Source: Podarcis filfolensis (taxonomy: Eukaryota). From it: a stretch of DNA of 64,000 bases. The notes below the pieces were generated by a model. That model was given only the letters and a program-made list of their open reading frames with translations, was not told where the DNA came from and did no database searches. The stretch's first letter is position 1. The number at the start of each line of letters is the position of its first letter. A program made the translations under genes and the position numbers. Shown piece after piece: positions 5,540-59,940 of this stretch. The stretch lies in the NCBI GenBank assembly GCA_964270895.1, contig OZ185438.1. The stretch is one strand, 5' to 3'.

Positions 5540-6156
5540 TCTTAGAAGCTTTCAAAGTTACTTCGATGAAGAAGCCAGAAGCAAAGGAGAACTTAACTGA
5601 GATAACTTTTACACAGTCTGCTCGCATGTAGAATACACACTGCAATATTGGAATTTCATTTGTATTAAGGAAATAATTCTAGTCGAAACAAAACAAAACC
5701 AAGAAAATTGTATTAACAATCCAACTCAATTAAAACTTTCATGTGAATATTTTGTTTTGACCTCAGGTGCATCGGCATAGTTAAGATCTTGTTTTGCGAA
5801 ATAATTTATAGGCTCCGAAAAGTTGCTGTAGAAGCTTTTAACAGAACCTCTACCTGCATTCAAATGTTTTTGAAGTATAAAATGACACCAAAAGTTCCAT
5901 TTGCATTTCTCCTTTAAGATGTACTGCACATCATATACTAGATTGGTTTGCTCTGTTTTTCTCTGCCTGTGCATATAACAAATATATTTATATATTAGTT
6001 TTAACCAATATAAGGTATTCTGAGATGTAGGTCACTTTCTTTAGCATAAGAGAAATGGTCACTTTCCATACTATTTCATAAGACCTGCACGATACACTGC
6101 AAAATCGAAATACAGCACTTTGCAAAATTTCAGATTGTGAAATGAGTGCCACTTAC

Positions 6157-16522: not shown

Positions 16523-16773
16523 GTGGTGTAGTGGTTAAGAGCAGTAGTCACGTAATCTGGTGAACTGGGTTCGCGTCTCCGCTCCTCCACATGCAGCTGC
16601 TGGGTGACCTTGGGCTAGTCACACTTCTCTGAAGTCTCTCAGCCCCACTCACCTCACAGAGTGTTTGTTGTGGGGGAGGAAGGGAAAGGAGAATGTTAGC
16701 TGCTTTGAGACTCCTTAGGGTAGTGATAAAGCGGGATATCAAATCCAAACTCGTCTTCTTCTTCTTCTTCTTT
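16523..16773 (+). mobile_element. tRNA-derived squamate SINE (Squam3-like) with (CTT)n tail
   Basis: A-box tggtgtagtggttaaga, CORE-like gggtgaccttgggctagtcac, L2-like 3' part and microsatellite tail; related copies at 22778 and 57007. The family name is from memory. Confidence 0.8.
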
Positions 16774-20676: not shown

Positions 20677-21483
20677 CCAAAGTGTTTCAGGTACGGTTAA
20701 TTGTTGTGTTTTACTGTCACAATATCTGACAAAACCTATGGTCAAGATTTCAGAGTGCTGAAAGCCAGGGACAATTTTCACCGACACTATCTGGCTTTCA
20801 AAATTCATATCAAGCAATTCATGCCCTCATGAACTCAAGGCTATAAATATATTTTGAGCAAGGCTGAAGCTAGCGATAAATGTGGTGAGCCTTCTAACCA
20901 GAGAGGTCATTGCGAGCACACAGTATTGGCACGCTGAAACTCTGGCTTCCAGGCACAATTCATGAAACTTAGATTTGACCTATAAAGCATTTAGACCTAA
21001 ATGGCAAGTGCACATAAAGAGGAACTTTCCATGGCTGACCTACCAATTACAGAATTCACTCCCCTAGAAGCTAAACCTACCTTGAATGTGGCTGAGCTGG
21101 ATGGAGACAGTGAAGTGGGCAGGAATACAGTTCAATGGGTGGAGCCTTGCCATTTTTATTGTTCCTTCTGTCTTGCTGCCCTTCTTCACATTTCTTAAAG
21201 ACGCAAATCCATTAGGATCTCCATTTTTTAAAAAAACACAACCCAAGGAATTTATTAAGAACCAAGTAAGACTTTAACATGGCAGGGACCGCAGGAAGCG
21301 ATTAAACCTTCCCTCACTTCATGGTCTTCCTTCTGCTAGCTATTAACTGGCATGGAGGGCAGGTGAGGAAGAAGACTGGCATCCTTTGCCAGTGCCAATC
21401 CAATTCAGGGACCAAGTAGCCATTATTCTTTTAAAAAAAGAAAAAGAAAGATCCTAATCATAGATCTCCCATCACATCTATTA

Positions 21484-21837
21484 GGTAAAGGTAAAGGGAC
21501 CCCTGACCATTAGGTCCAGTCGTGACTGACTCTAGGGTTGCGGCGCTCATCTCGCTTTATGGGCCGAGGGAGCCGGCGTACAGCTTCTGGGTCATGTGGC
21601 CAGCATGACTAAGCTGCTTCTAGCGAACCAGAGCAGCGCACGGAAACGCCGTTTACCTTCCCGCTGGAGCGGTACCTATTTATCTACTCGCACTTTGATG
21701 TGCTTTGGAACTGCTAGGTTGGCAGGAGCAGGGACCGAGCAACGGGAGCTCACCCTGTTGCGGGGATTCGAACTGCCGACCTTCTGATCAGCAAGTCCTG
21801 GGCTCTGTGGTTTAACCCACAGCGCCACCCACGTCCC
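21484..21837 (-). mobile_element. Sauria SINE, full length
   Basis: Reverse-complement consensus; TSD atcacatctatta at 21471-21483 and 21838-21850. Confidence 0.93.
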
Positions 21838-22777
21838 ATCACATCTATTAAGATAAGGTAAAAGTTCACTTTTTATTTTTTTGAAATTATCATTCCCAAT
21901 TCATTGAAAGAGACATCTAAAATTGATGAAGCCATGGTTTATAAATAATTTGTATGTTGTTTGGATGAATACACAGTACTCTTTTTGGTGCTATATATTA
22001 TCAGTTTACATATACATGCTTTGGTGAGCATTGGGATAAATGTGCCTTTTAATTTTTTTGGGTCAAATTTTCAGGAAATGAACTGAGAGTGAAAAAGGAA
22101 AAGAAGCTATCTTGCTATAAAGAGGTAAACAAATCTTCGCTATTGGGCAAATGCTGTTAATTTGCGCGGTTTTTCTGTTTAAACAACTATCAGCAACTAC
22201 AATCAAAACACCAAACAGCACAATGTGTTCTGTTACATCAGCATCTAATTATACATCAGAACCATGTGTCTGAAGCCTTACTGCCTTCAAAGATATACAG
22301 CCTCATTTTCATTAAATGGAACATGAAGTCAAGACCTTTGATTGACAAGGCACTGATCACACTTCACGCAAGACACTCTAACCTAAAAAAACACGTCTCT
22401 GTTCTGATACAAATTCACACTCGGTTGCACATCTACAATGGAGTTCTCACCCAGGCCCTGTTGGACTGTGTGTGTGAGCATTTTGAGGTGGGCAGGATCT
22501 GTCTCCCCATTCCAGATTAATAGTTACCTACCACTAGGGCTAGAGATGAATCATGATATGGTTTTTGTCTCACTATCAACAGGCAAAATTAAGCTGGTTC
22601 ACTGAAAATCCAGGCAGGGGCATGGTGGGTGGGAATGATATCTTAACTGGTAAAAACTCTTGCTTTGTGTCATCAAAAGGACACTTTTTTAACATATATT
22701 TTTATTGGTAGATGCTGGGGCATGGTGAATTCTTAAAAGGAAGATGGGGCACCATCTTTACAGGATTGTATGCACAT

Positions 22778-23035
22778 GAAGAAGAAGAAGAAGAAGAGAA
22801 GAAGAGTTTGGACTTGATATCCCGCCTTTCACTCCCCTTCAGGAGTCTCAAAGCGGCTAACAATCTCCTTTCCCTTCCTCCCCCACAACAAACTCTCTGT
22901 GAGGTGAGTGGGGCTGAGAGACTTCAAAGAAGTGTGACTGGCCCAAGGTCACCCAGCAGCTGCATATGGAGGAGCGGAGACACGAACCCGGTTCCCCAGA
23001 TTACGAGACTACCGCTCTTAACCACTACACCACAC
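22778..23035 (-). mobile_element. Squam3-like SINE
   Basis: Reverse complement of the 16523-16773 family, with (GAA)n tail. Confidence 0.8.
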
Positions 23036-24987: not shown

Positions 24988-25213
24988 CCAATGTGTCTTT
25001 CAGATTTTTAACCAAGGAACCCTTCTTCAAGCTGTTCTTCCTCTCAACATAATTTGATGGCACATATCCTGTTTTGTTGGCTGCGTTTCTTACCCTCCAC
25101 CATGTTTTGGAATCATCTAACAGCCAGAGGCGTTCATTCTTCTTTATGTCAAGTTCTTGGTCCTGTTGTGCAGTGTAATCCCACTTTGCTATAACAATAA
25201 CTTCTTCTGTCAT
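24988..25213 (-). CDS. NCK2: NCK2 first coding exon (226 nt CDS, SH3-1); exon probably begins at 25229 with 16 nt of 5'UTR
   Basis: [76 protein letters not shown]. Donor TTG G|gtaagt at 24988/24987; acceptor tttcatgacag|AGGGACTCCATGAAAG-ATG. The intron 6879-24987 is phase 1. The terminal SH2 exon was not found in 1-6156. Confidence 0.97.
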
Positions 25214-25852
25214 CTTTCATGGAGTCCCTCTGTCATGAAACAAATACATTCATTGAAAAACTGCACATACTCCTCCGTTTCACCATTGAAGATTGAAAAC
25301 ATAGAGAAAGCTTTAAAAAGAAAGAACATCCTTGCAGAGCAAAAACGCTACGTTTCTGATGCAGCACTAAACCACATTCCCGTAGAATAGGTCCAGATCA
25401 GCCCCTCACCCTTTTTCTGATCTGCTTCCAACAACTTTGTGCACATGTGGCACAGTCTAAGCAGAAACTTACCTTGCCACCACACAGGTTGACTACTTCA
25501 TGATCCTACCTCAAGATTTCTCATAACACTGCATCCAATTTGTTGGGCTGCAATTCATTGCAGATGCTGGAAGTTTAGTTTCATTTTAGGGGAGAAGAGA
25601 TTATAAGCTTCAGGAGGATGTGAAGATTAGAATTAAGACAATGAGATGCAGAGTGAAAGGAAATACAACTTAAGAACGGCAAGATCAGACATTTTTGTTT
25701 TAATGGAACTCCCATAATATACTACTTGAAATCTAACCTGAACAATGAGTGTGGATGAAATATTTTGCTGAACTTCTCTAATATGATTGCTCATCCTTTG
25801 AATGAACCTGTTGTCATCCTTGGGTAAGTTTTAATCGGTTGCTAATGTTCCC

Positions 25853-30869: not shown

Positions 30870-32114
30870 GGGAAGTTCTGCCACTTCCCAAGTCATCCCA
30901 AGTTCAAGCACTGGCTCAAAGGACAGGTGGGTGAACAAATCGAGAATGCAGCTTCCACAGTGCTACCCTGTATTAAAGGAGGCAGTGTTACAGAAAGTGC
31001 ACACAGTTCTGTTTCTTGCTACAGGAGAAACATTGCTCTGGCATCTGAGTATAACTTGCAGAGAACCTGTTCGGTGCTAAACTACAAAGGCTGGTGTGGC
31101 TTTTTAAAAGGAAGAATGCATGAATACTGATTAACCAGATGTTCCTTGTCAAAATTATCACAGCTGGGAGAAAAAAAATGTCACTGATAAATATCAAACT
31201 GCCAAAAAAAGCAACCACAAGCGCCTAATATATGCTTATGTTCTCAGGCAGGAAAAAAACACTCCTAGAAACTTTGAACCTTTGTATCTTCTGAAGAAAC
31301 AATGAAATGCCACTTAACAACACACACACACAAATATACTACAAGATACAACTTTATCCCAATCAGAAAAGATGTTTCTATATCGGACTATCTTCAACTT
31401 ATTTCTATGGGTGATAATTCAACTAAGTCATGCTGTCGTTCTGGCCAGTAGAATTCTGTATCAATTCATTTTCAGTTCTAATTTAAGATTCTGGTATTAG
31501 TCTTTAAAGTCCTAAGTGTGGGTCGAGGTTATCTTAACAACCACCTGCACCTATATGAACCTGCCTGAGCTTTTAAGGTGCCTGGCTCCCTGCTTAGAGC
31601 TGTAATACTGACAAGCATTAAAGGACAAAGCCTTTTCTGTGGTGACCCCATATCCTTGGAATCATCCCCCCCTAAAAAAAAAAATACACATGGCATCTTC
31701 TTTGCTACGTCTTTAGGAGAGACTTGGAGACTTTTGTTGTTGTTGCTCAAGTCTTATTTTGGGTAATTTTATGGTGTTGTACTTTAATTATAGTTTTTAC
31801 TGCTGCTGCTGCTATTTTAATTTTGTTTCTGCAAGCAGCTTTGAGACCCAGATGAGGTAGTTTTAAAACAAATAAATGATCCGGAGTTTTTAGTATATAG
31901 TTATTTATTACTGACTATGTTGTGAGATGCCATTTAAGGAAAGATAATCTTAAAGCTGGGGAAAAAACCCAACAAGGCCCGTCTAGCTAGTAAACATATG
32001 AACAAATTTAACAACTGCCATACCCTGACAATTGTAAAAACCTGTTACCTGTGACTTTGTGTCACTGGAGGAACTGTTGCAGAATGAGACTATTGAAAAT
32101 GAGATTCTAAATTA

Positions 32115-32356
32115 CAGTGGTACCTCAGGTTAAGTACTTAATTCGTTCTGGAGGTCCGTACTTAACCTGAAACTGTTCTTAACCTGAAGCACCACTTTAG
32201 CTAATGGGGCCTCCTGCTGCCGCTGCATCGCCGCTGCACGATTTCTGTTCTCATCCTGAAGCAAAGTTCTTAACCTGAAGCAGTATTTCTGGGTTAGCAG
32301 AGTCTGTAACCTGAAGCGTATGTAACCTGAAGTGAATGTAACCCGAGGTACCACTG
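32115..32356. mobile_element. Tc1/mariner MITE, family A
   Basis: cagtggtacctc TIRs, TA TSD. Confidence 0.88.
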
Positions 32357-32399
32357 TAGTTTATACAAACCACTAGAAAAATCCTTCAGGAGTGACAAT

Positions 32400-33215
32400 A
32401 CACAATTCATACAGCCTACCTCCAGGTTAAACAAGCATTTTGTTTAGAATATAGGGCTCATTTGTCTTGCAACCACCGATAAAAACTTTGCCACTGCTAA
32501 TGTTCTAACATTTGTCCGGTCTTCCAGTAGGAACCTGACATAGTGAGCCTCTGATTTTCCCGGGAAAGGTACCAGCAAGGGTAGTATCAGTTCAGCCCTG
32601 GCTTGCTCATATTTTGCACAATGCAACAAAATATGTTTTATGGAATCGATGTCTTGAGCACACGAGCAAAGTCTGTCCTGGTAGGGAACTCCTCTCAACC
32701 TGCCATCCAACACTGCAGAAGGAAAGACATTTAGTCTGGCTTTGGTGAAAAGCCTTCGGTAGTTTGGTACTGTCAGGTTTTTAATGTTAGATGTTAACTT
32801 AAAGACATACCCATATTGAACTCCTACTGCCAGCGGACTACAGACTGCGTGTGATCGTGATCGCAAGTCACTGTGTGCATTATCCCATATTCTTTGCTTT
32901 GACATCTTTTGGGCACCTTCATAACCCAGGTAATACAGTTGGGGGCGGGGGGAGACAGAACAATTGAGGTGGCTTTTTTAGCCATGGTTTTCTGCCATTT
33001 GCTGACAAATTCCTCATCGGTCAGGTGTTGGTACAAACCCTTCCCTAGATTAAACACTGAAATCCTGAGCCAATGTTTTAGGGCAGCCCGCCATGCTTTA
33101 GTTGAAATTGGGCATTCACCAGCTTCTAACAGAAGTACGGAGTTGGGGACGCAGTTGGGTACTTTTATTTAAAATGCACCTCTGGGTTATTTGTGGGGCA
33201 TAGGAATTCGTTCAT
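32400..33215 (-). mobile_element. non-LTR retrotransposon ORF2 3' fragment, RTE-X-like
   Basis: IKVPNCVPNSVLLLEAGE...AWRAALKHWLR (frameshift at a C-run near 32945) ...YRRLFTKARLNVFPSAVLDGR...RLCSCAQDIDSIKHILLHCAKY carries a CxC..H..C knuckle typical of RTEX-like ORF2 C-termini. The clade assignment is inferred. Confidence 0.65.
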
Positions 33216-33227
33216 CCCCCCCCCCCC

Positions 33228-33324
33228 GGTGTGCTTTCGAACTGCTAGGTTGGCAGGAGCAGGGACCGAGAAACAAGAGCTTACCCTGTTGTGGGGATTC
33301 AAACCTCCAACCTTCCGATTGGGC
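33228..33324 (-). mobile_element. Sauria SINE fragment (3' part missing)
   Basis: Matches 37897-37993; abuts a C12 run and the RTEX-like fragment. Confidence 0.85.
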
Positions 33325-33883
33325 ACCACAAAACGAATTCCCTTAAATTCATGGGTTATTTGTACAAGATCTAGGGTTTCCCGAAGCAGCGCCCATGGGC
33401 AGCACAGCACCCAATGCCCCCTCGATGCCCATCAAAGCCCTCCGAACAAATAAATAAAATGTTGTCAGTTGTTGCCTACTTTCCTTTACCTTGATTAGCA
33501 GCAGGCTGGGCTAACTGGAAAAAAAGGAAGAGAAGGCTCCAAGCTGCCCCACCTTCTTCCCAGATAACCAGCTGTTGTTTCCTTTCTTGGAAAAGAAAGG
33601 GTCAAAAGGGGTTGGGGTGGCAAGGAGAGAGGGGAAAAAGAAACCGATATGCTCCACCTTGTATCCCCCCTCCAAATCTCTTCAGATAGGACCCTGCCAC
33701 TGGGGAATGAATGGGAGGCAGTAGGATGCAAAGTGAGTGCTGAGCCGGGGGGGTTCTTTTCGGAGTTTTTCTTTGCGTTTTGCCTCTCTTACTTAATTCT
33801 GGAGTAGGCGTGTGGGTCTTGGCCTCTTTTTTTGGTTTTGAAGTTGGGGGGGCGGCTTCCCTGTTTTGGGGGAGGGGGTTGTA

Positions 33884-34109
33884 CAGTGGTACCTCGGGTT
33901 ACATATGCTTCAGGTTACAGACTCCGCTAACCCAGAAATAGTGCTTCAGGTTAAGAACTTTGCTTCAGGATGAGAACACAAATCGTGCTCCGGCGGCGCG
34001 GCAGCAGCAGGAGGCCCCATTAGCTAAAGTGATGCTTCAGGTTAAGAACAGTTTCAGGTTAAGAACGGACCTCCGGAACAAATTAAGTACTTAACCCGAG
34101 GTACCACTG
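33884..34109. mobile_element. Tc1/mariner MITE, family A (in duplication copy 1)
   Basis: cagtggtacctc TIRs, TA TSD; counterpart at 38572-38821. Confidence 0.88.
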
Positions 34110-34695
34110 TACTCATTTTCTCAGGCAAGTTATTTGTTCTCTGGGACCAGATAGGCCCTCCAAGCGGTCATCTTGTTGTGGTTGCAAAACTGCCCCGTGA
34201 ACACCGATTTATGGCGGCGTTCACAACAGTTCTGCCGACTTCCAAACGTGCCCGCAGTCCCAAAAATGACCCACAAAAGAAGAAGCGGAAGGTATACAGA
34301 ATAGCGTGGGAGACATGAAAAGCGTGAACTTGGATGACGATAGTGACGGCTCCTTAGCACGATGCATGGGAGAGGAGGAGAGATTCCTCTGCTGAGTTTT
34401 AAGGGAGCAGGAAGATTTAGATTACGAGAAGGAAAATTTTACTTTCCAGTTCCCCAGTTCCAATGTCAGCCCACACCTGCCTACTTTAAATAATGAGCCT
34501 TCAGGGCATAAAATTACCTCTTTTACATAGCACTGTAAACTCCTAGGATTGGCTTGTTCCAAAATTAAAAGGTTTTCTCTCTTTCTCTTCTATTTCAAGT
34601 ATTGGAGTATTTCTTCTTTTCTTTCTTGTTCTTTATCTTCAGATATTAAACAAACGTTAATTTAAAAAATATTTCAAGAGGTGTATCTCTCTTAA

Positions 34696-34856
34696 AGACT
34701 ATCTGACTTTTAGAAGACATCTGAAGGCAGCCCTTTTTAGGGAAGTTTTTAATGTTTGATTGTTTTATCGTATTTTTAATGTTCTTTTGGGAGCTGCCCA
34801 GAGTGGCTGGGGAAACCCAGCCAGATGAGCAGGGTATAAATAATTATTATTATTAC
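34696..34856 (+). mobile_element. L2 LINE 3' end (copy 1; counterpart about 39408-39568)
   Basis: ctgaaggcagccctttttagggaagtttttaatg...cccagccagatgagcagggtataaataattatt, same family as 30561. Confidence 0.8.
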
Positions 34857-35130
34857 TTTAGGCACCCCAACCAGATCCTGAGCAGACCACAAGGGTCACA
34901 GGGTAGCCTACTTAATAGATTGGTTCTGCCTTACTCCAAATGTTCCTCACTGCTTTGTGGAGCAATCTGCTGAACAAACCAGGAAACTCCTTCCTTGATC
35001 CCTTGGAATTCAGCTTTTAAGAATGCACATTGTCCTTCCTTCCACATTTCTAGGCAGAGAAAGGCAATGAAGAGGATTTGGCCACAGGTTCCATATAAAC
35101 AAAAGAAGAGGGTGGAACTGAGAAATAAGA

Positions 35131-35343
35131 CAAAAAATTTTTTTTCCTTCCAGTAGCACCTTAAAGACCAACAGTTAGTTCTTGGTATGAGCTTTCGTGT
35201 GCATGCACACTTCTTCAGATACACTCCTTCAGATACACACGAAAGCTCATACCAAGAACTAACTGTTGGTCTTTAAGGTGCTACTGGAAGGAAAAAAAAA
35301 TTTTTGTTTTGACTATGGCAGACCAACACGGCTACCTATCTGT
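35131..35343. mobile_element. Penelope-like element (PLE) short insertion with inverted pseudo-LTR
   Basis: Perfect 15-bp TSD aactgagaaataaga (35116-35130, 35344-35358); empty site at about 39828-39842; arms 35131-35201 and 35236-35306 are inverted repeats; sequence resembles reptile PLE pLTRs (gaaagctcatacc...ctttaaggtgctactgga...ggcagaccaacacggctacc) and carries a hammerhead motif. Confidence 0.85.
35185..35222 (-). ncRNA. minimal type I hammerhead ribozyme motif
   Basis: Minus strand reads GUAU-CUGAAGA-A-GUGUGC-AU-GCACAC-GAAA-GC-UC-AUAC: stem I GUAU/AUAC, core CUGANGA, 6-bp stem II, GAAA, palindromic AGCU stem III and a CUC cleavage triplet. Confidence 0.85.
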
Positions 35344-36865
35344 AACTGAGAAATAAGAGTTCTGCTTGCAAAAGTACCTTCTCCAAAACAGAATCTGTGG
35401 CATTTTGGATATTATATAAGATGAGGGGAAATGAGTGGTGTGTGTGAAATCAACCAAGTCCCATGGATTTCACAGTTGGCAAATACACACTGCATAAAAA
35501 CAGAAAAGAATATTATGTTTACTCGCCTTTCCAATTCAATGTCTAAATCAAGACCATCGTGATCTGGGAATTTCCATGTTGGGTGCAGAATCACTGATCC
35601 TCTGTCTATAAGCTATCGTCACAGAATTTCAGTGTTTCACCCAGGCTCGGGTGGCAAGACACAATTCCCTTTACAACAGCTAAGTCCTATGTTTAAGGGA
35701 AAAGAGAAATAAATATCCGACTGGTCACCTGGTGCGTTGCAGTTATCCGCTCCAGCATGCAGATAATGGTTCATATATAGTGCAAGTCACTGCCAGTCTC
35801 AAAACTTTGAAGTTTGTATGAGATCTGGCCCTATCTGTTCTTTTGGCCTATTGATTTTCACATGAAAGAGCCGCTGCTGTTCTCAATTCACTTTTTCCAG
35901 AAGCATCGCAGCGCTGCTATCATTTGCGGGGGTGGGTGGGGTGGGGATTGGTTTCTAAACTGTGCAAATTTAACCTTGATCTTACCTACAAAGGACAAAA
36001 CTCCGAAACTTCTAATATTGCAAACCCGATTACTAATCCCCTAGAAAGCTATTACCTACTTTCTAAGGGAGTCTACTGTGTTGCTGTCTGTAAATGCTAT
36101 TACCGACCCTTCTGTCCTCTGAAAGGGAAACATGTATTCTAATCTGTATGATCAGAATACTGCAGATATTTTACAGTTTAAATAAAATTGCTAATTGGGC
36201 AGTGGGGGGGGGGGAAATCTCGCATAGATACAATACAATCAAGTTACTTATTTAGTTCGGGCATCACAGAAACAAATGTCACAACTGGTAGTATTCATAA
36301 TTTTTCTGTTCTTTCACAATCATAAATCTGATTGAGGAAATTGAGAGGAGTTAGGATTGCCAACTGGCCAATGAAACACGGCCTGCCCATGTCTCTTTAA
36401 GAGCAACTTGATATGCACGAATAACATCAAGTTAAAAACACAGCTAAGAAGGCTAGTTAAAACTTTGGCAACATCACAAGAGGAAAAGAAGAGAAGAATA
36501 GATTAGTGAAAGCCAGGCAAGGTTGAGAGTCAGGGATAAGGGAATGTAAATAAGCTGGATTATGACTCTGCCTTTTGCCCCTCGGTTGAAGAGCAGGGGC
36601 AGCTATTTAATAAATGATATGGATAAGGCAGGAAAAGCTGATTTCTTAAATGATACTGAAGGGCAAGGGATAGGGATAGCCTTACCAGATTTCTATCCAT
36701 CATGTAACATTACTTACAATAAATAAATAAAAAACAGGAGTAGCAATTTGTTCTATGTTTGGAGTCGCTTAAAAAATAATAATCGTATGGCTCGTGACTG
36801 CAGCCCACATAAGAAACAACAGGTGCTGTTTTCCCACTTAGCTTCAGAGACTGTTGAGAGCTGAT

Positions 36866-37065
36866 NNNNNNNNNNNNNNNNNNNNNNNNNNNNNNNNNNN
36901 NNNNNNNNNNNNNNNNNNNNNNNNNNNNNNNNNNNNNNNNNNNNNNNNNNNNNNNNNNNNNNNNNNNNNNNNNNNNNNNNNNNNNNNNNNNNNNNNNNNN
37001 NNNNNNNNNNNNNNNNNNNNNNNNNNNNNNNNNNNNNNNNNNNNNNNNNNNNNNNNNNNNNNNNN
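36866..37065. other. assembly gap (200 N)
   Basis: Run of N. Confidence 0.99.
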
Positions 37066-37684
37066 GTGTATGTTTAACTTACAGTAAGCATTCTAGGAAC
37101 TGATTTTGCTTCATCCTCTGAATTGTTGATATGTTCAGGAATTAATTTGAAGCTGAAGTGGGTTGAATGCTGAAAATACATGGTAAGATTTACTACATTT
37201 CTATCCTGCCTTTCCTACAAGGAGTTTTACATTCCCCCCGCCCCCCAGCCCATTTTATTTTTACAACAACCCTGTGAGGTAGATTGACCAGTGTTTGGAA
37301 AGTTCATTTTAAAAAGGAACTGCTTTTCCCCCGTTTATTCTGTGCAAAAATTTCCAGTCATACACTTGTAGTATAAAATGAATTCATAAAAAGCTCATGT
37401 AGGGTCTAAAAATAAATCAGGGGCAACACATAAGTAATAAAATGTCTGACAGATGAATGTCAGCAGATGCAGCTTTCCCCATAATTGTATTTTCAGACTA
37501 AGAAAGGTTTACCCTGTTTAATTTCTGCCTGCCACACAGCTGTTAGAGGCACAAGGCATCACTTGGTTCTTGTACCTGTATTTCCTGCTACAAACTGCTC
37601 CTGTGGGAAAAGAACAAATATCCTCATAGAGGAATATACAGTCATAACTCAGGTTACAGCCATTTCAGGTTGTGTTTTTTTTTG

Positions 37685-37993
37685 GGTAAAGATAAAGGGA
37701 CCCCTGACCATTAAGTCCAGTCGCAGACGACTCTGGGGTTGCGGCACTCATCTCGCTTTACTGGCCGAGGGAGCTGGCGTTTTTTCCGGGTCATGTGGGC
37801 CAGCATGACTAAGCCGCTTCTGGCAAAACCAGAGCAGCACACAGAAAACACCGTTTACCTTCCCGCCGGAGCGGTACCTATTTATCTACTTGCACTGGTG
37901 TGCTTTCGAAATGCTAGGTTGGCAGGAGCAGGGACCGAGCAACAAGAGCTTACCCTGTTGTGGGGATTCAAACCTCCAACCTTCCGATCGGGC
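37685..37993 (-). mobile_element. Sauria SINE, 5' head truncated
   Basis: Tail ggtaaagataaagggacccc at 37685; similarity is lost after ccttccgatcgggca. Confidence 0.88.
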
Positions 37994-40900
37994 ACCACAA
38001 AACAAATTCCCTTAAATTCATGGGTTATTTATACAAGATCTAGGGTTTCCCGAAGCAGCGCCCATGGGCAGCACAGCACCCAATGCCCCCTCGATGCCCA
38101 TCAAAGCCCTCCGAACAAAAAAATAAAATGAACAAATAAATAAAATGTTGTCAGTTGTTGCCTACTTTCATTTACCTTGATTAGCAGCAGGCTGGGCTAA
38201 CTGGAAAAAAGGAAGAGAAGGCTCCAAGCTGCCGCACCTTCTTCCCAGATAACCAGCTGTTGTTTTCTTTCTTGGAAAAGAAAGGGTCAAAAGGGGTTGG
38301 GGTGGCAAGGAGAGAGGGGAAAAAGAAACCGATATGCTCCACCTTGCATCCTCCCTCCAAATCTCTTCAGATAGGACCCTGCCACTGGGGAATGAATGAG
38401 AGGCAGTAGGATGCAAAGTGAGTGCTGAGCCGGGGGGGGGGGTTCTTTTTGGAGTTTTTCTTTGCGTTTTGCCTCTCTTATTTAATTCTGGAGTTGGCGT
38501 GTGGGTCTTGGCCTCTTTTTTTGGTTTTGAAGTTGGGGGGCGGCTTCCCTGTTTTGGGGGAGGGGGTTGTACAGTGGTACCTCGGGTTACATATGCTTCA
38601 GGTTACATACACTTCAGGTTACAGGTTACTATTTCAGGCTAACCCAGAAATAGTGCTTCAGGTTAAGAACTTTGCTTCAGGATGAGAACAGAAATCGTGC
38701 TCCGGCGGCGCGGCAGCAGCAGGAGGCCCCATTAGCTAAAGTGATGCTTCAGGTTAAGAACAGTTTCAGGTTAAGAACGGACCTCCGGAACAAATTAAGT
38801 ACTTAACCCGAGGTACCACTGTACTCATTTTCTCAGGCAAGTTATTTGTTCTCTGGGACCAGATAGGCCCTCCAAGCGGTCATCTTGTTGTGATTGGAAA
38901 ACTGCCCCGTGAACACCGATTTATGGCGGTGCTCACAACAGTTCTGCCGACTTCCAAACGTGCCCGCAGTCCCAAAAATGACCCACAGAAGAAGAAGCAG
39001 AAGGTATACAGAATAGCGTGGGAGACATGAAAAGCGTGAACTTGGATGACGATAGTGACGGCTCCTTAGCACGATGCATGGGAGAGGAGGAGAGATTCCT
39101 CTGCTGAGTTTTAAGGGAGCAGGAAGATTTAGATTACGAGAAGGAAAATTTTACTTTCCAGTTCCCCAGTTCCAATGTCAGCCCACATCTGCCTACTTTA
39201 AATAATGAGCCTTCAGGGCATAAAATTACCTCTTTTACATAGCACTGTAAACTCCTAGGATTGGCTTGTTCCAAAATTAAAAGGTTTTCTCTCTTTCTCT
39301 TCTATTTTAAGTATTGGATTATTTCTTCTTTTCTTTCTTGTTCTTTATCTTCAGATATTAAACAAACGTTAATTTAAAAAATATTTCAAGAGGTGTATCT
39401 CTCTTAAAGACTACCTGACTTTTAGAAGACATCTGAAGGCAGCCCTTTTTAGGGAAGTTTTTAATGTTTGATTGTTTTATCGTATTTTTAATGTTCTTTT
39501 GGGAGCTGCCCAGAGTGGCTGGGGAAACCCAGCCAGATGAGCAGGGTATAAATAATAATTATTATTACTTTAGGCACCCCAACCAGATCCTGAGCAGACC
39601 ACAAGGGTCACAGGGTAGCCTACTTAATAGATTGGTTCTGCCTTACTCCAAATGTTCCTCACTGCTTTGTGGAGCAATCTGCTGAACAAACCAGGAAACT
39701 CCTTCCTTGATCCCTTGGAATTCAGCTTTTAAGAATGCCCATTGTCCTTCCTTCCACATTTCTAGGCACAGAAAGGCAATGAAGAGGATTTGGCCACAGG
39801 TTCCATATAAACAAAAGAAGAGGGTGGAACTGAGAAATAAGAGTTCTGCTTCCAAAAGTACTTCTCCAAAACAGAATCTGTGGCATTTTGGATATTATAT
39901 AAGAAGAGGGGAAATGAGTGGTGTGTGTGAGATCAACCAAGTCCCATGGATTTCACAGTTGGCAAATACACACTGCATAAAAACAGAAAAGAATACTATG
40001 CTTACTCGCCTTTCCAATTCAATGTCTAAATCAAGACCATTGTGATCTGGGAATTTCCATGTTGGGTGCAGAATCACTGATCCTCTGTCGATAAGCTATC
40101 GTCACAGAATTTCAGTGTTTCACCCAGGCTCGGGTGGCAAGACACAATTCCCTTTACAACAGCTAAGTCCTATGTTTAAGGGAAAAGAGAAATAAATATC
40201 CGACTGGTCACCTGGTGCGTTGCAGTTATCCCCTCCAGCATGCAGATAATGGTTCATATATAGTGCAAGTCACTGCCAGTCTCAAAACTTTGAAGTTTGT
40301 ATGAGATCTGGCCCTATCTGTTCTTTTGGCCTATTGATTTTCACATGAAAGAGCCGCTGCTGTTCTCAATTCACTTTTTCCAGAAGCATTGCAGCGCTGC
40401 TATCATTTGCGGGGGTGGGGGTGGGGTGGGGATTGGTTTCTAAACTGTGCAAATTTAACCTTGATCTTACCTACAAAGGACAAAACTCCGAAACTTCTAA
40501 TATTGCAAACCCGATTACTAATCCCCTAGAAAGCTATTACCTACTTTCTAAGGGAGTCTACTGTGTTGCTGTCTGTAAATGCTATTACCAACCCTTCTGT
40601 CCTCTGAAAGGGAAACATGTATTCTAATCTGTACGATCAGAATACTGCAGATATTTTACAGTTTAAATAAAATTGCAAATTGGGCAGTGGGGTGGGAATC
40701 TCGCATAGATACAATACAATCAAGTTACTTATTTAGTTCGGGCATCACAGAAACAAATGTCACAACTGGTAGTATTCATAATTTTTCTGTTCTTTCACAA
40801 TCATAAATCTGATTGAGGAAATTGAGAGGAGTTAGGATTGCCAACTGGCCAATGAAAGACAGCCTGCCCATGTCTCTTTAAGAGCAACTTGATATGCACG

Positions 40901-41352
40901 AATAACATCAAGGTGCAGTTAAAAACACAGCTAAGAAGGCTAGTTAAAACTTTGGCAACATCACAAGAGGAAAAGAAGAGAAGAATAGATTAGTGAAAGC
41001 CAGGCAAGGTTGAGAGTCAGGGATAAGGGAATGTAAATAAGCTGGATTATGACTCTGCCTTTTGCCCCTCGGTTGAAGAGCAGGGGCAGCTATTTAATAA
41101 ATGATATGGATAAGGCAGGAAAAGCTGATTTCTTAAATGATACTGAAGGGCAAGGGATAGGGATAGCCTTACCAGATTTCTATCCATCATGTAACATTAC
41201 TTACAGTAAATAAATAAAAAACAGGACTAGCAATTTGTTCTATGTTTGGAGTCGCTTAAAAAATAATAATCATATGGCTCGTGACTGCAGCCCACATAAG
41301 AAACAACAGGTGCAGTTTTCCCACTTAGCTTCAGAGACTGTTGAGAGCTGAT
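37897..41352 (+). repeat. segmental direct repeat, copy 2
   Basis: Near-identical to 33228-36865; lacks the PLE insertion; several small indels and substitutions. Confidence 0.95.
38572..38821. mobile_element. Tc1/mariner MITE, family A (in duplication copy 2)
   Basis: TIRs and TA TSD; carries extra ttcaggttac units relative to 33884-34109. Confidence 0.88.
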
Positions 41353-41455
41353 CTCTTTCATCAACTGATGACGATGGTTTATGTATCATTTAAAAAAACT
41401 TTATCAAAATGAACTTAACAAGCAGAACACTGCTTTGGTGCTGGCAAGTACCTGT

Positions 41456-41809
41456 GGAGGGATGCGGGTGGCGCTATGGGTTAAACTACAGAGCCTAGGA
41501 CTTGCCGATCAGAAGGTTGGCGGTTCGAATCCCCGCGATGGGGTGAGCTCCCGTTGCTCAGTCCCTGCTCCTGCCAACCTAGCAGTTCCAAAGCACATCA
41601 AAGTGCAAGTAAATAGGTACCGCTCCGGCGGGAAGGTAAATGGCTTTTCCGTGTGCTGCTCTGGTTCGCCAGAAGCGGCTTAGTCATGCTGGCCACATGA
41701 CCTGGAAGCTGTACGCCAGCTCCCTTGGCCAATAAAGCGAGATGAGCGCCGCAACCCCAGAGTCGGTCACAACTGGACCTAATGGTCAGGGGTCCCTTTA
41801 CCTTTACTT
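41456..41809 (+). mobile_element. Sauria SINE, full length
   Basis: Consensus; TSD agtacctgt at 41447-41455 and 41810-41818. Confidence 0.92.
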
Positions 41810-43688: not shown

Positions 43689-46126
43689 TCACCATGAAGT
43701 CCCATGGCAGGTTACAGCAATGTAAAAAAATACGTGTTAAAATCAGTTAATAAAGAATTACAGTCAAGAGACTAGGGTGGATGCTAAACCATATACCTCA
43801 GGAAAGAGTAAAGATTTGTGTCTTCAGTATACAACTAAAGCGATACCATTGAAGTGCCGGGTGCACCTCTGTGGTGAGGGAATTCCATAGCTGAAGGGTC
43901 TTCTGAGCCACCACTGCCATAATTTCCAAGGGCAGTAGTGCTACCAAGAGGACCCCCCTCTGCACATCATAACACTGTAGAAGAGGTGGTCTTTCAGACT
44001 GCTGTTAAAAGTTTTAGTTGAAAAATACCTAATAATCAGTTACTGATTGCAACCCAAATGCTTTTCCTAAAAAAGGGGAAAATATTAGAGGGACACAGCT
44101 AATCTTCCTCCACTCCCAGGTCAGGTTAATCTTTAGGTACTGCAAGCATATTATATTATATTATATAACCATGTTTTATAATTAAAGGCAATGGACTCTT
44201 AAACTAAGGCCATGGCTGATACGTAGCTTTGTGGGGAGCTGGTAAAAGAGAAAACTTCTCCTTCAGAGCACTTCATTCATTATAGCACCAAAACAAAGAA
44301 ACAACTATACTAATTGAATGTAAAAGGACCAGACAGGAAGGATGAAAGAAACTGACAGCTTGTGGGAATGAGAGTGAGGTACAAGGAGAATGGGAGAAAA
44401 ATTACAGGAGATGGGTAAAAATATATTGAGAGACATGTTGGGGTGAGAAGGAAAAGAGTTAAATGAAAACATCTCCCTGCAGTATAACTTAAGGAAAGCC
44501 AAGTTATTGAACTCCCTGTCACAAGGGAAATGCTTTGGCGAAGAATTTAGCAATTTCTAAAGATGGATTAGAGATCATTTTTAAAAAATGCTAAACACTG
44601 CCTCCATCTACCACCAATTTTTGAATGGCTCTGCCACTGCACCACCATTTTGTGACTAGTGGACCTCAGTAATTTTCAGCTGCCTTAAGTGAACACTGAG
44701 GATAGGTTTTAAAACCTTCTGCACCTGACCTCTTCATGATCAAACATAATAATTAAAAAACTGTAAAAAGGGTTAAAGAAATTGGAAAGCATGTCAAAAG
44801 TTCTTTTAAGTATTTGGAGACGCTCTACAAAACGCACATATACTAAAACAGTAATATACCTGAAATGAGGCATTTGCTCTAAAAAACAAACACTGCTGTG
44901 ATGAATAGTTGAACATTACAGGTACATTTGGAATATTATTTCAACCATGACAGCTTTTGCGGTTAAAATGCACCATTGCATTCATAGGGAAGAAGATACT
45001 AAAACTCATGCTACATCTTTTTTCATGACCCTAACAAAAAGGAGATGCGTACTCAAATAATCAGCTATCTCCCAAGGGAAAAGACCACATAGTTGCCCCA
45101 AAACAGTACTGAGAAAGTGTATATAGAGTATTAGAGCATTTCAGATCCTACTTAAATCTACTCAGAAGTAAGCCTCGTTGTTCAGTGTAAATTACTCCTG
45201 GGTAAGTACATATAGGATTGCAGCCTGAAAAACATAGTGGACGTTGCAGAAGCACTACAGATTCACTAAGAAGGAGAAGTCGTTCTCCCGTATTATTCAG
45301 GGGTCTAGCCAAAGATCAAGCAAAAAAAGGTTTAAGCTTGAATTGGTGTAGCTTAAGAAACATAAGAATGATTAAAAAACCAGGAGCTGATCATAAAGAA
45401 TATTAAGCAAGTTTAACAATGTGATTCTTTATGCTGACGTAGTCAACAATAGCTTATCATACCCTAAAAATAAACAGGGTTAGAAATCCAGCAGCAATAT
45501 GGACTATGGCTTGATTAAAAAGCAAACTTACCCCTATTGTTGGACTTCCAAGGCTCCCTCCTTTTTAAATTTTGCTATATTGTATTTTGATTGTTGACTG
45601 TACTACTGTGTCAAAGACTAATGACAGAATGCTATAAATTGCTAAACAATATGCTGTTGCAGACTTGTCAATCTAATGGCACCTTCAGAGCTATCTGAAT
45701 ACAGTATCTGAGCACGAATCCAATCATGTCGTTTCTGCTTTTAAAACTCAAATAGAGAGTCCTGCAGGATTAGATGTGGAAATCATTCAAAAATATGGAT
45801 TAGTTTCATAAATAGTTCCAACTCTGACACAAACCCTGAGCTACATCCTGGTCTGCTCTCAACGTGGGAGGAAAGGAACATATTTTGTTCCAGCAAGAAT
45901 GAGACTAGCTGCTGCCTGAGCTGCCTTTGGTCCAAGCCCCATTAGCATGGGGTAAAAATCTGTCTCACATGATTAATTATAATTTTAAAATGCATATGTA
46001 TACAGAAAGAGAGAGAAAAAATAGCAACACAGTCCTAACTATGCCTACTCAGAAGTCTATTGGATTCAGTAGGGCTTACTTCCAGATTAAGTAGGGTGAG
46101 GATTTTCATTGTAAATAAAAACAACA

Positions 46127-46340
46127 CAGTGGTACCTTGGGTTAAGAACTTAATTTGTTCTGGAGGTCTGTTCTTAACCTGAAACTGTTCTTAACCTGAG
46201 GTACCACTTTAGTTAACGGGGCCTCCTGCTGCAGCCGCTTGATTTCTGTTCTCATCCTGAAGCAAAGTTCTTAACCCGAGGTACTATTTCTGGGTTAGGG
46301 AGTCTGTAACCTGAAGTGTCTGTAACCTGAGGTACCACTG
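46127..46340. mobile_element. Tc1/mariner MITE, family A
   Basis: cagtggtacct TIRs and family A body. Confidence 0.85.
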
Positions 46341-47189
46341 TACACTATAATCATAACAAAGGTTACTAAAATTTGCTTACAAAACAGAGTATTTTGTAAA
46401 TTCTGCACCGGGATAGCTGATGTTGTGGACTATAACACTCATCAATCCCAGCCTCCATTGCTAATGGTTAGGGAGGAGAGTTGTTCTGGAGGGCATCATA
46501 TTGGCTATTCCTGTTATCTACTATATATTTTGGAAAGTGGTTTGTCTGTTTGTTCTTCATAGGTTCAGCCGCCTACCCAGATATTGTCGCCAACCTCGGC
46601 GGAGGGCGGGGAGGGATCAGTGTCAATGTTTGAGTGCCAGGCACCATTATGAATCAAGATGGTGCACTAAAAGGTGACTTTGGTGTGAAGGTGCCTCTTT
46701 ATTGACATAGGCTTGGCCACCTCTAAAGATAACATTGCCAAACTCTGTGAAGACATTCCCCAAGGAGGGGGAAGCAGACTTCATTGCCATTGGTATGCTG
46801 GCTGCCATTTTGAATCAAGATTTCGAACCAAAAAGTGACTCTGGCATGATGGGTCTAAAGTGGCCAATTACACAATCCATTTAAAAAACACAGTATTTGG
46901 TGGGTTCTTTAAAAATCCCAGGCAGTGTCGAGTACTCCCTGTTAATATATCTTAGTTTCATGATGTTAATGAGAAGAATCCAATATTTTTCACAACTTTG
47001 ACCTGTCTATCCATCTTTATTCACACATACTCCTCTGAATATTTTGCAATTTGAGAAACCTTCCACACATACACTTGGATGCCACTGATTTTCATTAAGC
47101 ATGCCAGAATTTACTACTGTTAAAAGACTCCACGCTTGGTCATAATGCTCTTGAGTGAGCAATTGATTAAAGAATACATGCCTAATATT

Positions 47190-47500: not shown

Positions 47501-47725
47501 AAATTGTAAATCCAGACTTCCTTTAGTTAACAGACTTATACATTTAATTTTTGAATGTCACATAGAGCCTAAGTGATTATGATGCTCAGTAAGAGTCTAG
47601 CCTACGAATGTTATAACCTAGATTGCTCACAGGAAAATCCTTCCACAAAGGATACCGAGATAAAATTAAGTTAGCTAGCTATGGTCACACCTTTCCTTCA
47701 AACCTTTTCAGAAAGCTTATTTCTA

Positions 47726-47966
47726 CAGTGGTACCTCAGGTTAAGTACTTAATTCGTTCCGGAGGTCCGTTCTTAACCTGAAACTGTTCTTAATCTGAAG
47801 CACCACTTTAGCCATTGGGCCCCCTGCTGCTGCCGCGCTGCCGGAGCTCAATTTCTGTTCTCATCCTGAAGCAAAGTTCTTAACCTGAGGTAATATTTCT
47901 GGGTTAGCAGAGTCTGTAACCTGAAGCGTACGTAACCTGAAGCGTATGTAACCCGAGGTACCACTG
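47726..47966. mobile_element. Tc1/mariner MITE, family A
   Basis: TIRs and TA TSD. Confidence 0.88.
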
Positions 47967-50262
47967 TATTTCCTTTGTCTTTCTCAAGCCATTCCCTACT
48001 TCGCGTGTTTTGAAATGCGTCCTGAAGAACAAGATCATGCTTAGCTTTCCTTACTGACACCATTGCCTATAGAAAGCTTTAAACCCTGAACAGCATTAAA
48101 TCCTAGGTGGAAATGAGCGCTCAAGGTAATTTGTTATCCAAGGTGCACATCTTAAGTCACTAAGCAAATAATGTTCTGAGCAACAGTCAAACCAGAGTGC
48201 TTAACCGTTAAGGCACGTTTCACAAAATTTCCAAGCACTTCACTTTCAAGTCATTGTTGGCGTACACTTCCATCATTTCTGAGAAACACTGTTAAGAAGG
48301 GAGATTCCTAAAAAGACAGTATCTTCTGTTAACAGACACCTATGGGCTTCACCTGAAGTAGCAATGTTCAGCAACAGACCAAATTTAAGCAGTACACGAG
48401 CAGCATGGGACCAATCCATACAAGAATAAAGATCAGTAATTTGTTCCCGGGACTTGCTTGAACTCTGCATAATGGTACCAGTAGAAACTACAATAATCAA
48501 TAAGAGATGGGAATTCGTCCTCATGCAGCTCTATGCTCTGTATTGTCTACCTGTGGCTCTCCAGATGTTGTTGGACCAGAACTCCCCAGCTAGCATCACC
48601 AAGGGTCAGGGCTGATGAGACTCCAATAACACCATGGCAGACTCCCGGTGCCCCATCCCTGATCTTTTTTAAAAAAAACCAAAGCTCTACACAGGAGCAC
48701 ACCCCCCCAAACGGAAAGTACTCCAAAACAGTTCAATTCCACAAGCCCATCCATAATTTGAGGTGCACCTTCTCCAGTTGTCCCCATCTTCAAAGGTTAG
48801 GCGGCTGGTGAGCAGACCTTTTCAGTGATGACACACAGTTGGTTTTATCAATTAAACTTTGTGGATTTCTTGTGTCAGTAGGCCAAAGTCTGAGGACAGA
48901 AGACAGGATGGCAGTTTAACGGAAACCAAGTAGGAATTCTGGCATATGTTCTTAGATAGTTATACTGGCTTTTAAATTTAACAAACATACATGCTGAAGA
49001 TTATTTTGGTTTATTTGCTGAAGCATTCAGCCTCACAAGAGAACAGGGAAGTTTTGCATTCCCAGTCCTTCTGATATTTTGGGCAGCCAGAAGAAAGCCA
49101 TGTAGAGTTTCCGTCACCCACCTGAATCCAGCCTAAACCTTTTGGGGAAGGAAAGGCCTTGGAAACAAGAGTCTGTCTCCAGGCACGACCAACCTAGAAA
49201 ACTGCCTTCTTTACATGCTTTTCAAGAGTAGCTCACGTTGGTGGAATTCCTTCCACAAATCCTCCTTGCGAGCGACTTCTTTCTGCCCTTGACCACATCA
49301 ATGCAAGCGCTTGTTCTGTCCTAGGGCAGTACAACAAACCTCTCAGTGGTATGCATAGTTTCATTTGAGATGTTATATTGCACACATTCCACTCCTAGCA
49401 GAGCATCAGTAAGCTCCAGAATTTGAATGATGTCTGCTCCATCAATGAATATAGATAACAGTGGGTGACTCATGCTGTAGCTGAGAAGTCTTCTATGCAT
49501 TACATTAAGTCACTGTTTTATATCCGGGGGCATTCTTACCGCAAAAGACAGTGAAGGAGGGCATACCTAACTTCTGCGTTCAGAGAAACCATCAAAATTC
49601 CTACCCTGTGTTTGGCCATCAAGTTATGAAGAGTGCACTACATGCTTTTTAAATTAATGCCAGTCTTTTTCTTTATTTCTTTCTTTTGACACCCTGGTTG
49701 TTTAGCTACAAAATAATGTTTTATTGTTCTGACTTTTGTTCACTTTTCTCCATAGTTAAACATCTCCATAGCAGAAGGTCTCCAATTGTCTTTGAATAGA
49801 TGGTCTTTATTGTTTAATCACTCTTCAATCACTACAAGTAAACAAGCACCTTTAGCAAATGCTGTCTGCACATTAGACATCTGATCACAGCAATGTGTTT
49901 CCATTTGTTTTCTTGTGTGCTGATGGGCTTCCTTAAATTCTGTTATTATTCTGGTAATTCTGGGTCCAACTAAACATTGTTATGACTGAGGTAAAGTGCC
50001 ACGGCTGGGGTACTGGTAAACTAACTAGGTTCAAACAGATCTTAAGACCTCTTAAAGAGACACCGTGAAATATTATCTAGAATGTTGGACTTGAGATCTA
50101 GGAGACCCAAGTTAAAATGTCTGCTGAGCCATGAAGCTCACGATGTACCGTTGAATCAATAGGCTAGCCTATGCCACACAACTGTTGTGATGATAAGTCA
50201 AGACTTCTACTCTTCTATTTCCTTGGATAGGAAAGCAAGATTGAAAGCTTATAAACACTATA

Positions 50263-50941: not shown

Positions 50942-51758
50942 AAACCATGCTTACAGAGGGGGTGGCAGCCCTTAAAAATCACTCCTGAGGCTCAGAGGGA
51001 ATTTCCAAAAAGGTTGTTTCATGCTAAACTGAAGCAGGGGGAAATTGCTGACCTCAACACGCCATAGATGCAAGTGAATGTACATAATCAGAACATTAAT
51101 TCTTTAGGATCCTATGCATAGAGATCCTATGTTACCTTCATTAAGTTACCGCTGTCTTTCAAACTAATGTTATTATTGTGTTATAGATCAGTTTTCACTT
51201 AAGGAAAGTCAAGTCCATGAGAAAGCCTTCACCCACCACCACTACTATTCATTTCTGCATAGCAGTTCCAACCCCTACCCCCCAAAAACAGAATCCTCAG
51301 GCTGAATTCCTGAGTCTCAAACTTGCCTTGCCCTCCCAGAGCAAAATAATCATGGTGATATAAAAAGCTCAGAAAAAGGCAAATTGTTTTGAATATTTTA
51401 TTAAAAAACAGCTTATAAATCACCCCCTGAATCTAAAGAGACAGCAACATTCTGAGATTAATTAAAGCGTTATAGAATGAAATCTTATCTGACTCTGGAG
51501 TCAGCATACGTCCTAGGTGTTTTATCTTCTTAAAATTCCATTACATGTTTTGCTTTTATTGTGATATGCGATAATACCAAATTCCTAGCAAGCAGAATAG
51601 TAGCCCGGGGGCATAGCAGAAATGAACAAACACCAGACACTAAATTCTGCATCTAACCAACCCCTACGCAACGGCCCCAGGATTTAGGCTGCTCTGCTGA
51701 GCAGTATAGTTACTTCTGAAAGCAATAACCCTAAATCTCTTTCTACCCCAGTAGCCTA

Positions 51759-52118
51759 AAGGTAAAGGTACCCCTGACCATTAGGTTCAGTTGCGGACGA
51801 CTCTGGGGTAATGGCGCTCATCTCGTTCTATAGGCCGAGGAAGCCAGCGTTTGTCCACAGACAGCTTCCAGGTCATGTGGCCAGCATGACTAAGCTGCTT
51901 CTGGCGAACCAGAGCAACCCACGGAAATGCCGTTTACCTTCCCACCGGAGCGGTACCTATTTATCTACTTGCACTTTGATGTGCTTTCGAACTGCTAGGT
52001 GGGCAGGAGCTGGGACCGAGCAATGGGAGCTCACCCCGCTGCGAGGATTCGAACAGCCAACCTTCTGATCAGCAAACCCTAGGCTCTGTGGTTTAGACCA
52101 CAGCGCCACCCGCGTCCC
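51759..52118 (-). mobile_element. Sauria SINE, full length
   Basis: 15-bp TSD taccccagYagccta at 51744-51758 and 52119-52133. Confidence 0.92.
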
Positions 52119-55972: not shown

Positions 55973-56328
55973 AGGTAAAGGTAAAGGGACCCCTGACCGT
56001 TAGGTCCAGTCGTGGCCGACTCTGGGGTTGCGGCGCTCATCTCGCTTTATTGGCTGAGGGAGCCGGCGTATAGCTTCCGGTTCATGTGGCCACCATGACT
56101 AAGCTGCTTCTGGCGAACCAGAGCAGCGCACAGAAACACCATTTACCTTCCCACCGGAGCAGTACCTATTTATCTACTCGCACTTTGACATGCTTTCGAA
56201 CTGCTAGGTTGACAGGAGCAGGGACCAAGCAAAGGGAGCTCACCCCGTTGTGGGGATTCGAACCGCCGACCTTCTGATTGCCAAGTCCTAGGCTCTGTGG
56301 TTTAACCCACAGCGCCACCCGCGTCCCC
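55973..56328 (-). mobile_element. Sauria SINE, full length
   Basis: 13-bp TSD gttgcttgYggta at 55960-55972 and 56329-56341. Confidence 0.92.
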
Positions 56329-56868: not shown

Positions 56869-57006
56869 NNNNNNNNNNNNNNNNNNNNNNNNNNNNNNNN
56901 NNNNNNNNNNNNNNNNNNNNNNNNNNNNNNNNNNNNNNNNNNNNNNNNNNNNNNNNNNNNNNNNNNNNNNNNNNNNNNNNNNNNNNNNNNNNNNNNNNNN
57001 NNNNNN
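56869..57006. other. assembly gap (138 N)
   Basis: Run of N, adjoining the tail end of a Squam3-like SINE. Confidence 0.99.
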
Positions 57007-59253: not shown

Positions 59254-59731
59254 CAGTTTAAGGTTGCAGCGTGAATATAAAATCTAGGGGAACCTGAGAT
59301 AGAAAACCTCACTGTGTGACGGGTCAGCAACGCAATGCAAGTATGTACACATGGCAATAAAGACTGTCTGCCTTATACTACAATCTTTCACATTTTACAT
59401 TAGCACTTATACAGCATATCTAACAGCATATGCAAACACAGTATTCTGATGTCCATTCGCACAGACTAGAAACAGCATCAGGTGCTGCTTCCCTTTGGTG
59501 CAATTCCATACATGGGTGAGGGCTGTAGTTGAATAATTTAATCAGGCGGGGAGGGGGAGAAAAGAAGCACTCTTGGTTCTTCGTATGCAACCAGCAGTCT
59601 TTCTTCCAGCATCCTGGCTGGGTCCAGACTTAGGGCTACATGGGAAAGAAGTCTCAAACCGTTTCAGATTCAGGATCCACTTTTAACCCCTAAATTGCAG
59701 CACCAAGCCCATTTAGCTCTTGCTGTATATA

Positions 59732-59940
59732 CAGCGGTACCTCAGGTTACATATGCTTCAGGTTACAGACTCCGCTAACCCAGAAATATTACCTCAGGTT
59801 AAGAACTTTGCTTCAGGATGAGAACAGAAATTGTGCTCCGGCGGCACGGCGGCAGCGGGAGGCCCCATTAGCTAAAGTGGTGCTTCAGGTTAAGAACGGA
59901 CCTCCGGAACGAATTAAGTACTTAACCTGAGGTACCACTG
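59732..59940. mobile_element. Tc1/mariner MITE, family A
   Basis: TIRs and TA TSD. Confidence 0.88.

Follow-up and report, generated by a model that had tools for sequence, protein, structure and literature searches.

Genomic setting and anatomy of the insert

The stretch of DNA analysed in this study (64 kb; referred to below as the window) carries coding exons of NCK2 on its - strand. The exon at 6130-6927 encodes an SH3-SH3 module (SH3-2, SH3-3) together with the beginning of the SH2 domain, and its best match among solved structures is NCK2. The first coding exon, which contains the start codon, is located at approximately 24990-25220.

Several dispersed repeats were recognized in the window. 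A MITE-like element, which is approximately 230 bp long and has terminal inverted repeats of some 20 nt (TACAGTGGTACCTCGGGTTA...), is located at 33882-34111, and further copies of it are found at 4824-5061, 32113-32358, 38570-38823, 46126-46342, 47724-47968 and 59730-59942. The flanks of these copies are AT-rich, and the raw-read depth of the element in a related species is about 44,000, compared with about 0.7 for unique sequence. Members of a SINE-like family (approximately 350 bp, 81-92% identity among copies) are present at 704-1060, 3207-3558, 21469-21843, 37687-37989, 41452-41806, 51757-52118 and 55976-56327; position 33228, the left breakpoint of a duplicated region considered below, also lies inside a member. 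Besides the run of 200 N that separates the two copies of this region, the window contains a second N run (56869-57006, length 138); the repeat immediately after it recurs at 16595-16734 and 22822-22961.

The subject of this analysis is an insert of 213 bp (35131-35343). It lies on the 5' side of the first NCK2 coding exon, at a distance of about 10 kb, either in a 5'-UTR intron of this gene or upstream of it. The insertion is non-coding and probably inert, and nothing points to a host function; the ORFs within it are either shorter than 30 aa or continue into the unique flank. The insert and the features related to it are as follows:

33228-36865, no strand: copy 1 of the region, which bears the insert; its right end directly abuts the N run
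35116-35130, no strand: left target-site duplication (TSD), AACTGAGAAATAAGA, identical at 15 of 15 positions to 35344-35358 and present as a single copy at 39828-39842
35131-35226, sense on the - strand: inverted element copy, whose reverse complement aligns with 35236-35306
35185-35222, - strand: candidate minimal hammerhead motif, found with our own descriptor scan (match at 35189-35218)
35213-35238, + strand: palindrome turn, consisting of a 12-nt direct repeat plus a 3-nt CAC overlap
35236-35306, + strand: direct element copy, 5'-truncated inside hammerhead helix II and lacking the CUGAAGA box
35307-35343, + strand: AC-rich one-sided tail of 37 nt, with no partner in the inverted arm
35344-35358, no strand: right TSD, identical to the left one
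36866-37065: run of 200 N between the copies
37897-41352, no strand: copy 2 of the region, with the empty site, probably the other haplotype
39828-39842, no strand: empty site, one copy of the AACTGAGAAATAAGA 15-mer with the same flanks

All of these items were re-checked on the sequence. The initial annotation had described a 213-bp insert with a perfect 15-bp TSD, inverted arms of about 71 bp with one mismatch, a 12-bp repeat and a unique 3' end, and each of these elements was confirmed. The inverted arms (35131-35201 and 35236-35306) comprise 71 nt and differ at one position, within an A/T run (35137/35300); if they are stretched to 74 nt, the number of mismatches increases to two. The sense strand of the element corresponds to the + strand of the right arm. 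The inverted copy has a 3' end devoid of the tail, as it begins where the tail of the direct copy starts, and its 5' end reaches 25 nt beyond that of the direct copy, with the result that it keeps the whole hammerhead motif.

At the turn of the palindrome, a 12-nt direct repeat, CTTCAGATACAC, is present at 35213-35224 and 35227-35238. It belongs to a 14-nt tandem repeat with one mismatch (35207-35220 and 35221-35234), and the antisense and sense parts of the insert overlap by the 3 nt CAC at 35236-35238. The 3' terminus of the element is CTATCTGT, with neither a terminal poly(A) nor a microsatellite, and the TSD is composed of 73% A+T. The hairpin predicted for the insert as RNA has a folding energy of -134.8 kcal/mol (z = -18.7), and the 28-mers tested from its structure have 0 matches expected in shuffled sequences; chance is thus ruled out as the source of these features. 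The predicted fold of an AC-rich stem-loop in the tail is weak, and no better than in shuffled sequences.

Two copies of the region and the age of the insertion

The region bearing the insert occurs twice in the window, and the two copies share 96-98% identity. Copy 2 contains the uninterrupted target reported in the initial annotation, in the form of a single 15-mer at 39828-39842. This annotation placed the empty site in a copy 4.7 kb away; the site is indeed intact, but the copy that carries it is probably the other haplotype and not a paralogue. We lean towards the view that copies 1 and 2 are two haplotypes set in tandem by the assembler. In this case, the sequenced animal would be heterozygous for the insertion. 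The empty site most likely represents the second allele at this locus, and the pair 33228-36865 / 37897-41352 is, as a by-product of this analysis, a likely false duplication in the assembly.

Three contig sets and one raw-read set (organism G, a related species) were aligned to positions 32900-36860. The alternative to two haplotypes, to which we assign a minor but appreciable probability, is that copies 1 and 2 are true paralogues, created by a nearby duplication, one of which received the insertion afterwards. The left breakpoint (33228) falls within a SINE-like repeat, which is found in full in front of copy 2, and the 831 bp preceding copy 2 (37066-37896) have no counterpart upstream of copy 1, as a non-allelic rearrangement would give; the haplotype reading therefore needs an extra structural difference at 33228. 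Against paralogues, the homology stops exactly at the 200-N run (36865 corresponds to 41352), and a conspecific individual and two related species have one version only, at single-contig depth, over the right 1.5 kb. Moreover, among the sites at which copies 1 and 2 differ, private substitutions number approximately 12 in copy 1, 15 in copy 2 and 12 in the conspecific sequence, and three sites unite these three sequences against the two other species. The about equal distances form a star of three alleles, without the pairing expected of orthologues and paralogues. A 17-bp tandem duplication, GAACAAAAAAATAAAAT, at position 33443 is shared by copy 2 and the conspecific contig, and is absent from copy 1.

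Contigs bridging the empty site were found in the conspecific genome (i.e. one with the same species label) and in the two related species. The conspecific contig (1,930 nt) has a depth of 11.8, equal to that of neighbouring contigs, which speaks for a homozygous empty site in this individual; the contigs of the related species have lengths of 939 nt and 920 nt. None of the contigs listed for the three genomes contains a filled site, although contig breaks induced by repeats can hide a filled allele. Since a second individual with this species label and both related species have an empty site, the insertion is young and not fixed. This agrees with the very recent origin proposed in the initial annotation, and the alternative of an old, fixed insertion can be set aside. 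The copy-1 lineage has approximately 12 private substitutions in about 2.7 kb, which sets an upper bound for the age of the insertion.

Candidate hammerhead motif and affinity to Penelope-like elements

The inverted arm, and only this arm, retains a motif resembling a minimal hammerhead ribozyme (min-HHR). Read on the - strand, its parts follow in the order GUAU, CUGAAGA, a bulged A, GUGUG-CAUG-CACAC, GAA, A-GC-U and C, then the predicted cut site and AUAC. The motif thus consists of (i) helix I (GUAU/AUAC), (ii) helix II (GUGUG-CAUG-CACAC), (iii) a 1-bp helix III within the palindrome AGCU and (iv) the cleavage-site C, and all invariant core positions of the hammerhead are present. Our descriptor, which was composed after the motif had been seen, gave one match in the 64-kb window and 0 in 200 shuffled windows. 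The architecture fits that of the min-HHRs of Penelope-like elements (PLEs), which have a bulged base 5' of helix II and a short palindromic helix III such as AGCU (PMC4209133).

None of the hammerhead families of Rfam matched in a scan of 34500-36000 (E <= 1), a result to be expected of min-HHRs without helix III. The only hits in this interval were miRNA and sRNA models below the threshold, driven by the hairpin; identity as a miRNA was rejected, as these matches are sub-threshold and caused by the long hairpin. Folded in isolation, the motif is weak. Given this weak fold and the failure of the Rfam models, what we claim for the insert is a candidate min-HHR of PLE architecture at the level of a motif, and not ribozyme activity.

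PLE insertions often consist of a copy adjoined by an inverted, 5'-truncated copy, and have a tail of 30-40 bp at one end only (PMC8557442). The insert displays the following traits of this group: (i) an inverted 5'-truncated copy beside a direct copy, i.e. a complex pLTR structure, (ii) a one-sided tail (37 nt, 35307-35343), which the inverted arm lacks, (iii) the hammerhead motif in the pLTR and (iv) membership in a dispersed multi-copy family with TSDs, here of 15 bp. The proposal of a Penelope-like insertion with an inverted pLTR, made in the initial annotation, is upheld by these features. The probable membership in the PLEs rests on such structural hallmarks; the insert is a clean but ordinary example of the known PLE insertion architecture.

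Domains of RT or GIY-YIG were absent in a Pfam search of 8 of the 10 ORFs of at least 130 aa in the window, which matched only the NCK2 exon. Scanning metagenome_contigs (two patterns), genome_contigs and viral_contigs for exact patterns gave no match, as expected, because these metagenome, prokaryote and viral collections contain no lizard DNA. Three 17-21-mers of the element, one of them also in RNA letters, were not found in the full text of papers.

The best point of comparison is Poseidon_Ac, a PLE of Anolis carolinensis. Its protein was shown in vitro to cleave and extend both DNA strands, and to start reverse transcription at two internal RNA sites, the interval between which is the tail; the main template is uncleaved, unprocessed RNA, and the cut site and the downstream start site are separated by 82-89 nt (Frangieh et al., PMC11167929). 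By our estimate, its upstream start site would lie about one tail length (30-40 bp) before the downstream one. The geometry of the insert is similar, its two 3' ends lying 58 and 95 nt from the predicted cut site. The hammerhead of Poseidon_Ac, which is active in experiments, also has the same layout, in which CUGAGGA is followed by one additional base, a long helix II and GAAACGUC. Its ORF starts at helix II, whereas the ATG in the helix II loop of the present element opens a frame of only 9 codons.

Taken together, the insert shares with Penelope/Poseidon insertions an inverted 5'-truncated copy abutting a direct copy, the one-sided tail, the TSD and the AT-rich target, as well as a min-HHR in which a bulged base precedes a long helix II, and helix III is palindromic and 1 bp long. 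Uncleaved RNA as the template, proposed below for the insert, would be a further trait in common with Poseidon_Ac. The element differs from Poseidon_Ac in having no sequence similarity outside the ribozyme core, and from Penelope/Poseidon elements in general in that its unit comprises only about 133 nt, with no ORF and no RT/GIY-YIG-encoding parent detected in the window.

Short hammerhead-bearing repeats of vertebrates have been described as non-LTR retrozymes, or pLTR-derived non-autonomous elements, the reptile consensus sequences of which have an average length of 176 bp (bioRxiv 10.64898/2026.07.22.740005). The present element resembles them as a short hammerhead-bearing repeat of reptiles related to the pLTRs of PLEs. 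However, non-LTR retrozymes form direct tandem units with a hammerhead in each; identity with them was rejected, since the insert has one hammerhead, inverted arms and no tandem unit.

The family to which the insert belongs is abundant. In organism G the raw-read depth is approximately 3,200 over the insert, compared with approximately 0.7 in the unique flanks, and the family has about a few thousand copies at >=90% identity in this related species. Position 35222 is a recurrent breakpoint of family copies, with joints 35222->35326 and 35222->33882 observed in several contigs.

Proposed route of integration and alternative explanations

How PLEs transpose is still poorly understood, and current ideas on where the inverted copy and the one-sided tail come from depend mostly on a single in vitro study. 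In a young insertion whose empty site is known, whose ends are intact and whose junction is unaltered, the succession of steps can be read off directly.

Each arm of the insert contains sequence that is missing from the other: 25 nt located 5' of CACACGAAAG are found in the left arm alone, and the 37-nt tail in the right arm alone. Neither arm was therefore copied from the other, and both snap-back self-priming and an inverted duplication at the DNA level were rejected on this ground. The arm-specific sequences support the conclusion that both arms were reverse-transcribed from RNA, with start points that would lie 37 nt apart.

We infer that both target strands served as primers, that the enzyme slipped once and that the agent was a PLE enzyme. 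The following steps are proposed:

(i) The target would be nicked on both strands, 15 bp apart, which would give rise to the TSD.

(ii) The top-strand 3' end at 35130 would prime a tail-less cDNA from the upstream start site, generating the inverted arm. AAGA, the last four bases of this primer, could pair with the UUUU that opens the tail, given one G-U pair.

(iii) This first cDNA would pass the uncleaved hammerhead and reach a position approximately 8 nt 5' of the CUGAAGA box.

(iv) The bottom-strand 3' end at 35344 would prime the second cDNA at the end of the tail, 37 nt further 3'; halting inside helix II, this cDNA would yield the direct arm.

(v) By a slip between two GUGU sites, the first cDNA would copy 12 nt again.

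(vi) The two cDNAs would be joined via the 3-nt CAC/GTG overlap at 35236-35238, and then filled in.

The product would be a dead-on-arrival palindrome, the only hammerhead motif of which is masked by its own antisense.

The slip in step (v) may have left its trace in the 12-nt repeat, which fits such an event because GUGU, as read from the sequence, occurs twice in the sense RNA, 14 nt apart. The repeat could also be native to the source element. The initial annotation had seen in this junction micro-duplication a template switch or twin priming by reverse transcriptase; the part of this view that stands is the origin of the inverted structure by reverse transcription, to which the arm-specific sequences testify, while the slip is only a possible cause of the repeat.

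We consider it likely, on balance, that the locus represents a recent, non-fixed insertion, in which the 3'-terminal part of a lizard PLE (short, abundant and hammerhead-bearing) was integrated via the two-strand-primed scheme. If correct, the two-strand, two-start reading would provide in vivo support for a model that has so far been based only on in vitro data for the anole element. A more specific version is put forward tentatively, and we would not rely on it: in one PLE integration event, each target strand would have primed at one of the two internal start sites, and the template of the family may be an RNA of about 133 nt, with its 5' end at hammerhead helix I (breakpoint 35222), this RNA being a minimal non-autonomous passenger of PLE enzymes.

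It was also suggested in the initial annotation that the insert might be a ribozyme-bearing mini-element in its own right. According to this explanation, the palindromic 213-bp unit is itself the non-autonomous element, and an older palindromic copy was transcribed and inserted in one target-primed pass, making two primers unnecessary. The family is short and abundant, as this would require, and non-autonomous elements derived from pLTRs have been proposed for vertebrates (bioRxiv 10.64898/2026.07.22.740005). A propagating unit should, however, retain its inversion point, and other family copies carry different head-to-head junctions. One of them, 35172->35265, is placed at the internal palindrome AACTAAGTTAGTT, and another, 35222->35326, connects the antisense arm to the last 18 nt of the tail. 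This variation suggests that the palindrome forms anew whenever a copy integrates, and speaks against a palindromic unit that propagates as such. Furthermore, the insert begins on the left at the tail-less start position, a boundary to which a read-through transcript would not conform; the hammerhead is confined to one arm; and the RNA would be locked in a hairpin of -135 kcal/mol. Permissive blastn detected no further family copy, and thus no second copy of the unit, in the 64-kb window. This explanation is accordingly disfavoured, and we regard it as improbable. A joint at 35144/35301 ('opposite strands', 248 reads) was rejected as an inversion point, as it represents an ordinary arm-plus-tail copy whose arm aligns better to the inverted arm.

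LINE-mediated events also show 15-bp TSDs, AT-rich targets and 5' inversion, the latter known from L1 twin priming. The insert combines all three (73% A+T in the target), and a LINE enzyme of the L1, L2 or CR1 type could have mobilised a SINE-like RNA, in which case the inversion would be classical twin priming and the resemblance to a hammerhead incidental. The use of both nicked target strands as primers, the 5' inversion and a microhomology junction are indeed common to L1 twin priming and the scheme proposed here. Nevertheless, the element ends in CTATCTGT, without the terminal poly(A) or microsatellite expected of LINE products. Twin priming takes the inverted part from RNA upstream of the direct part, whereas the two cDNAs of the insert cover the same 71 nt, from two defined internal starts 37 nt apart. 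The one-sided 37-nt tail and the PLE-type min-HHR likewise have no LINE counterpart, and a LINE origin appears very improbable.

A DNA transposon (a MITE or foldback element) with terminal inverted repeats, as the long inverted arms and the TSD might suggest, is hardly credible, since the right inverted repeat is not terminal (37 unique nt separate the arm from the TSD), a TSD of 15 bp is atypical, and the left arm runs beyond the arm homology into a hammerhead half.

With regard to the template in the two-strand-primed scheme, both arms of the insert lack a TA dinucleotide that many other family copies have. They therefore belong to the same subfamily, and possibly were templated by the same RNA molecule. 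Within the family, the extra TA is located at the mirror positions 35172 and 35264. It is present in about 84% of family reads in organism G, whereas in organisms A, B and D its share of the contig depth is only about 18-29%; this difference between organisms may reflect a lineage-specific subfamily shift.
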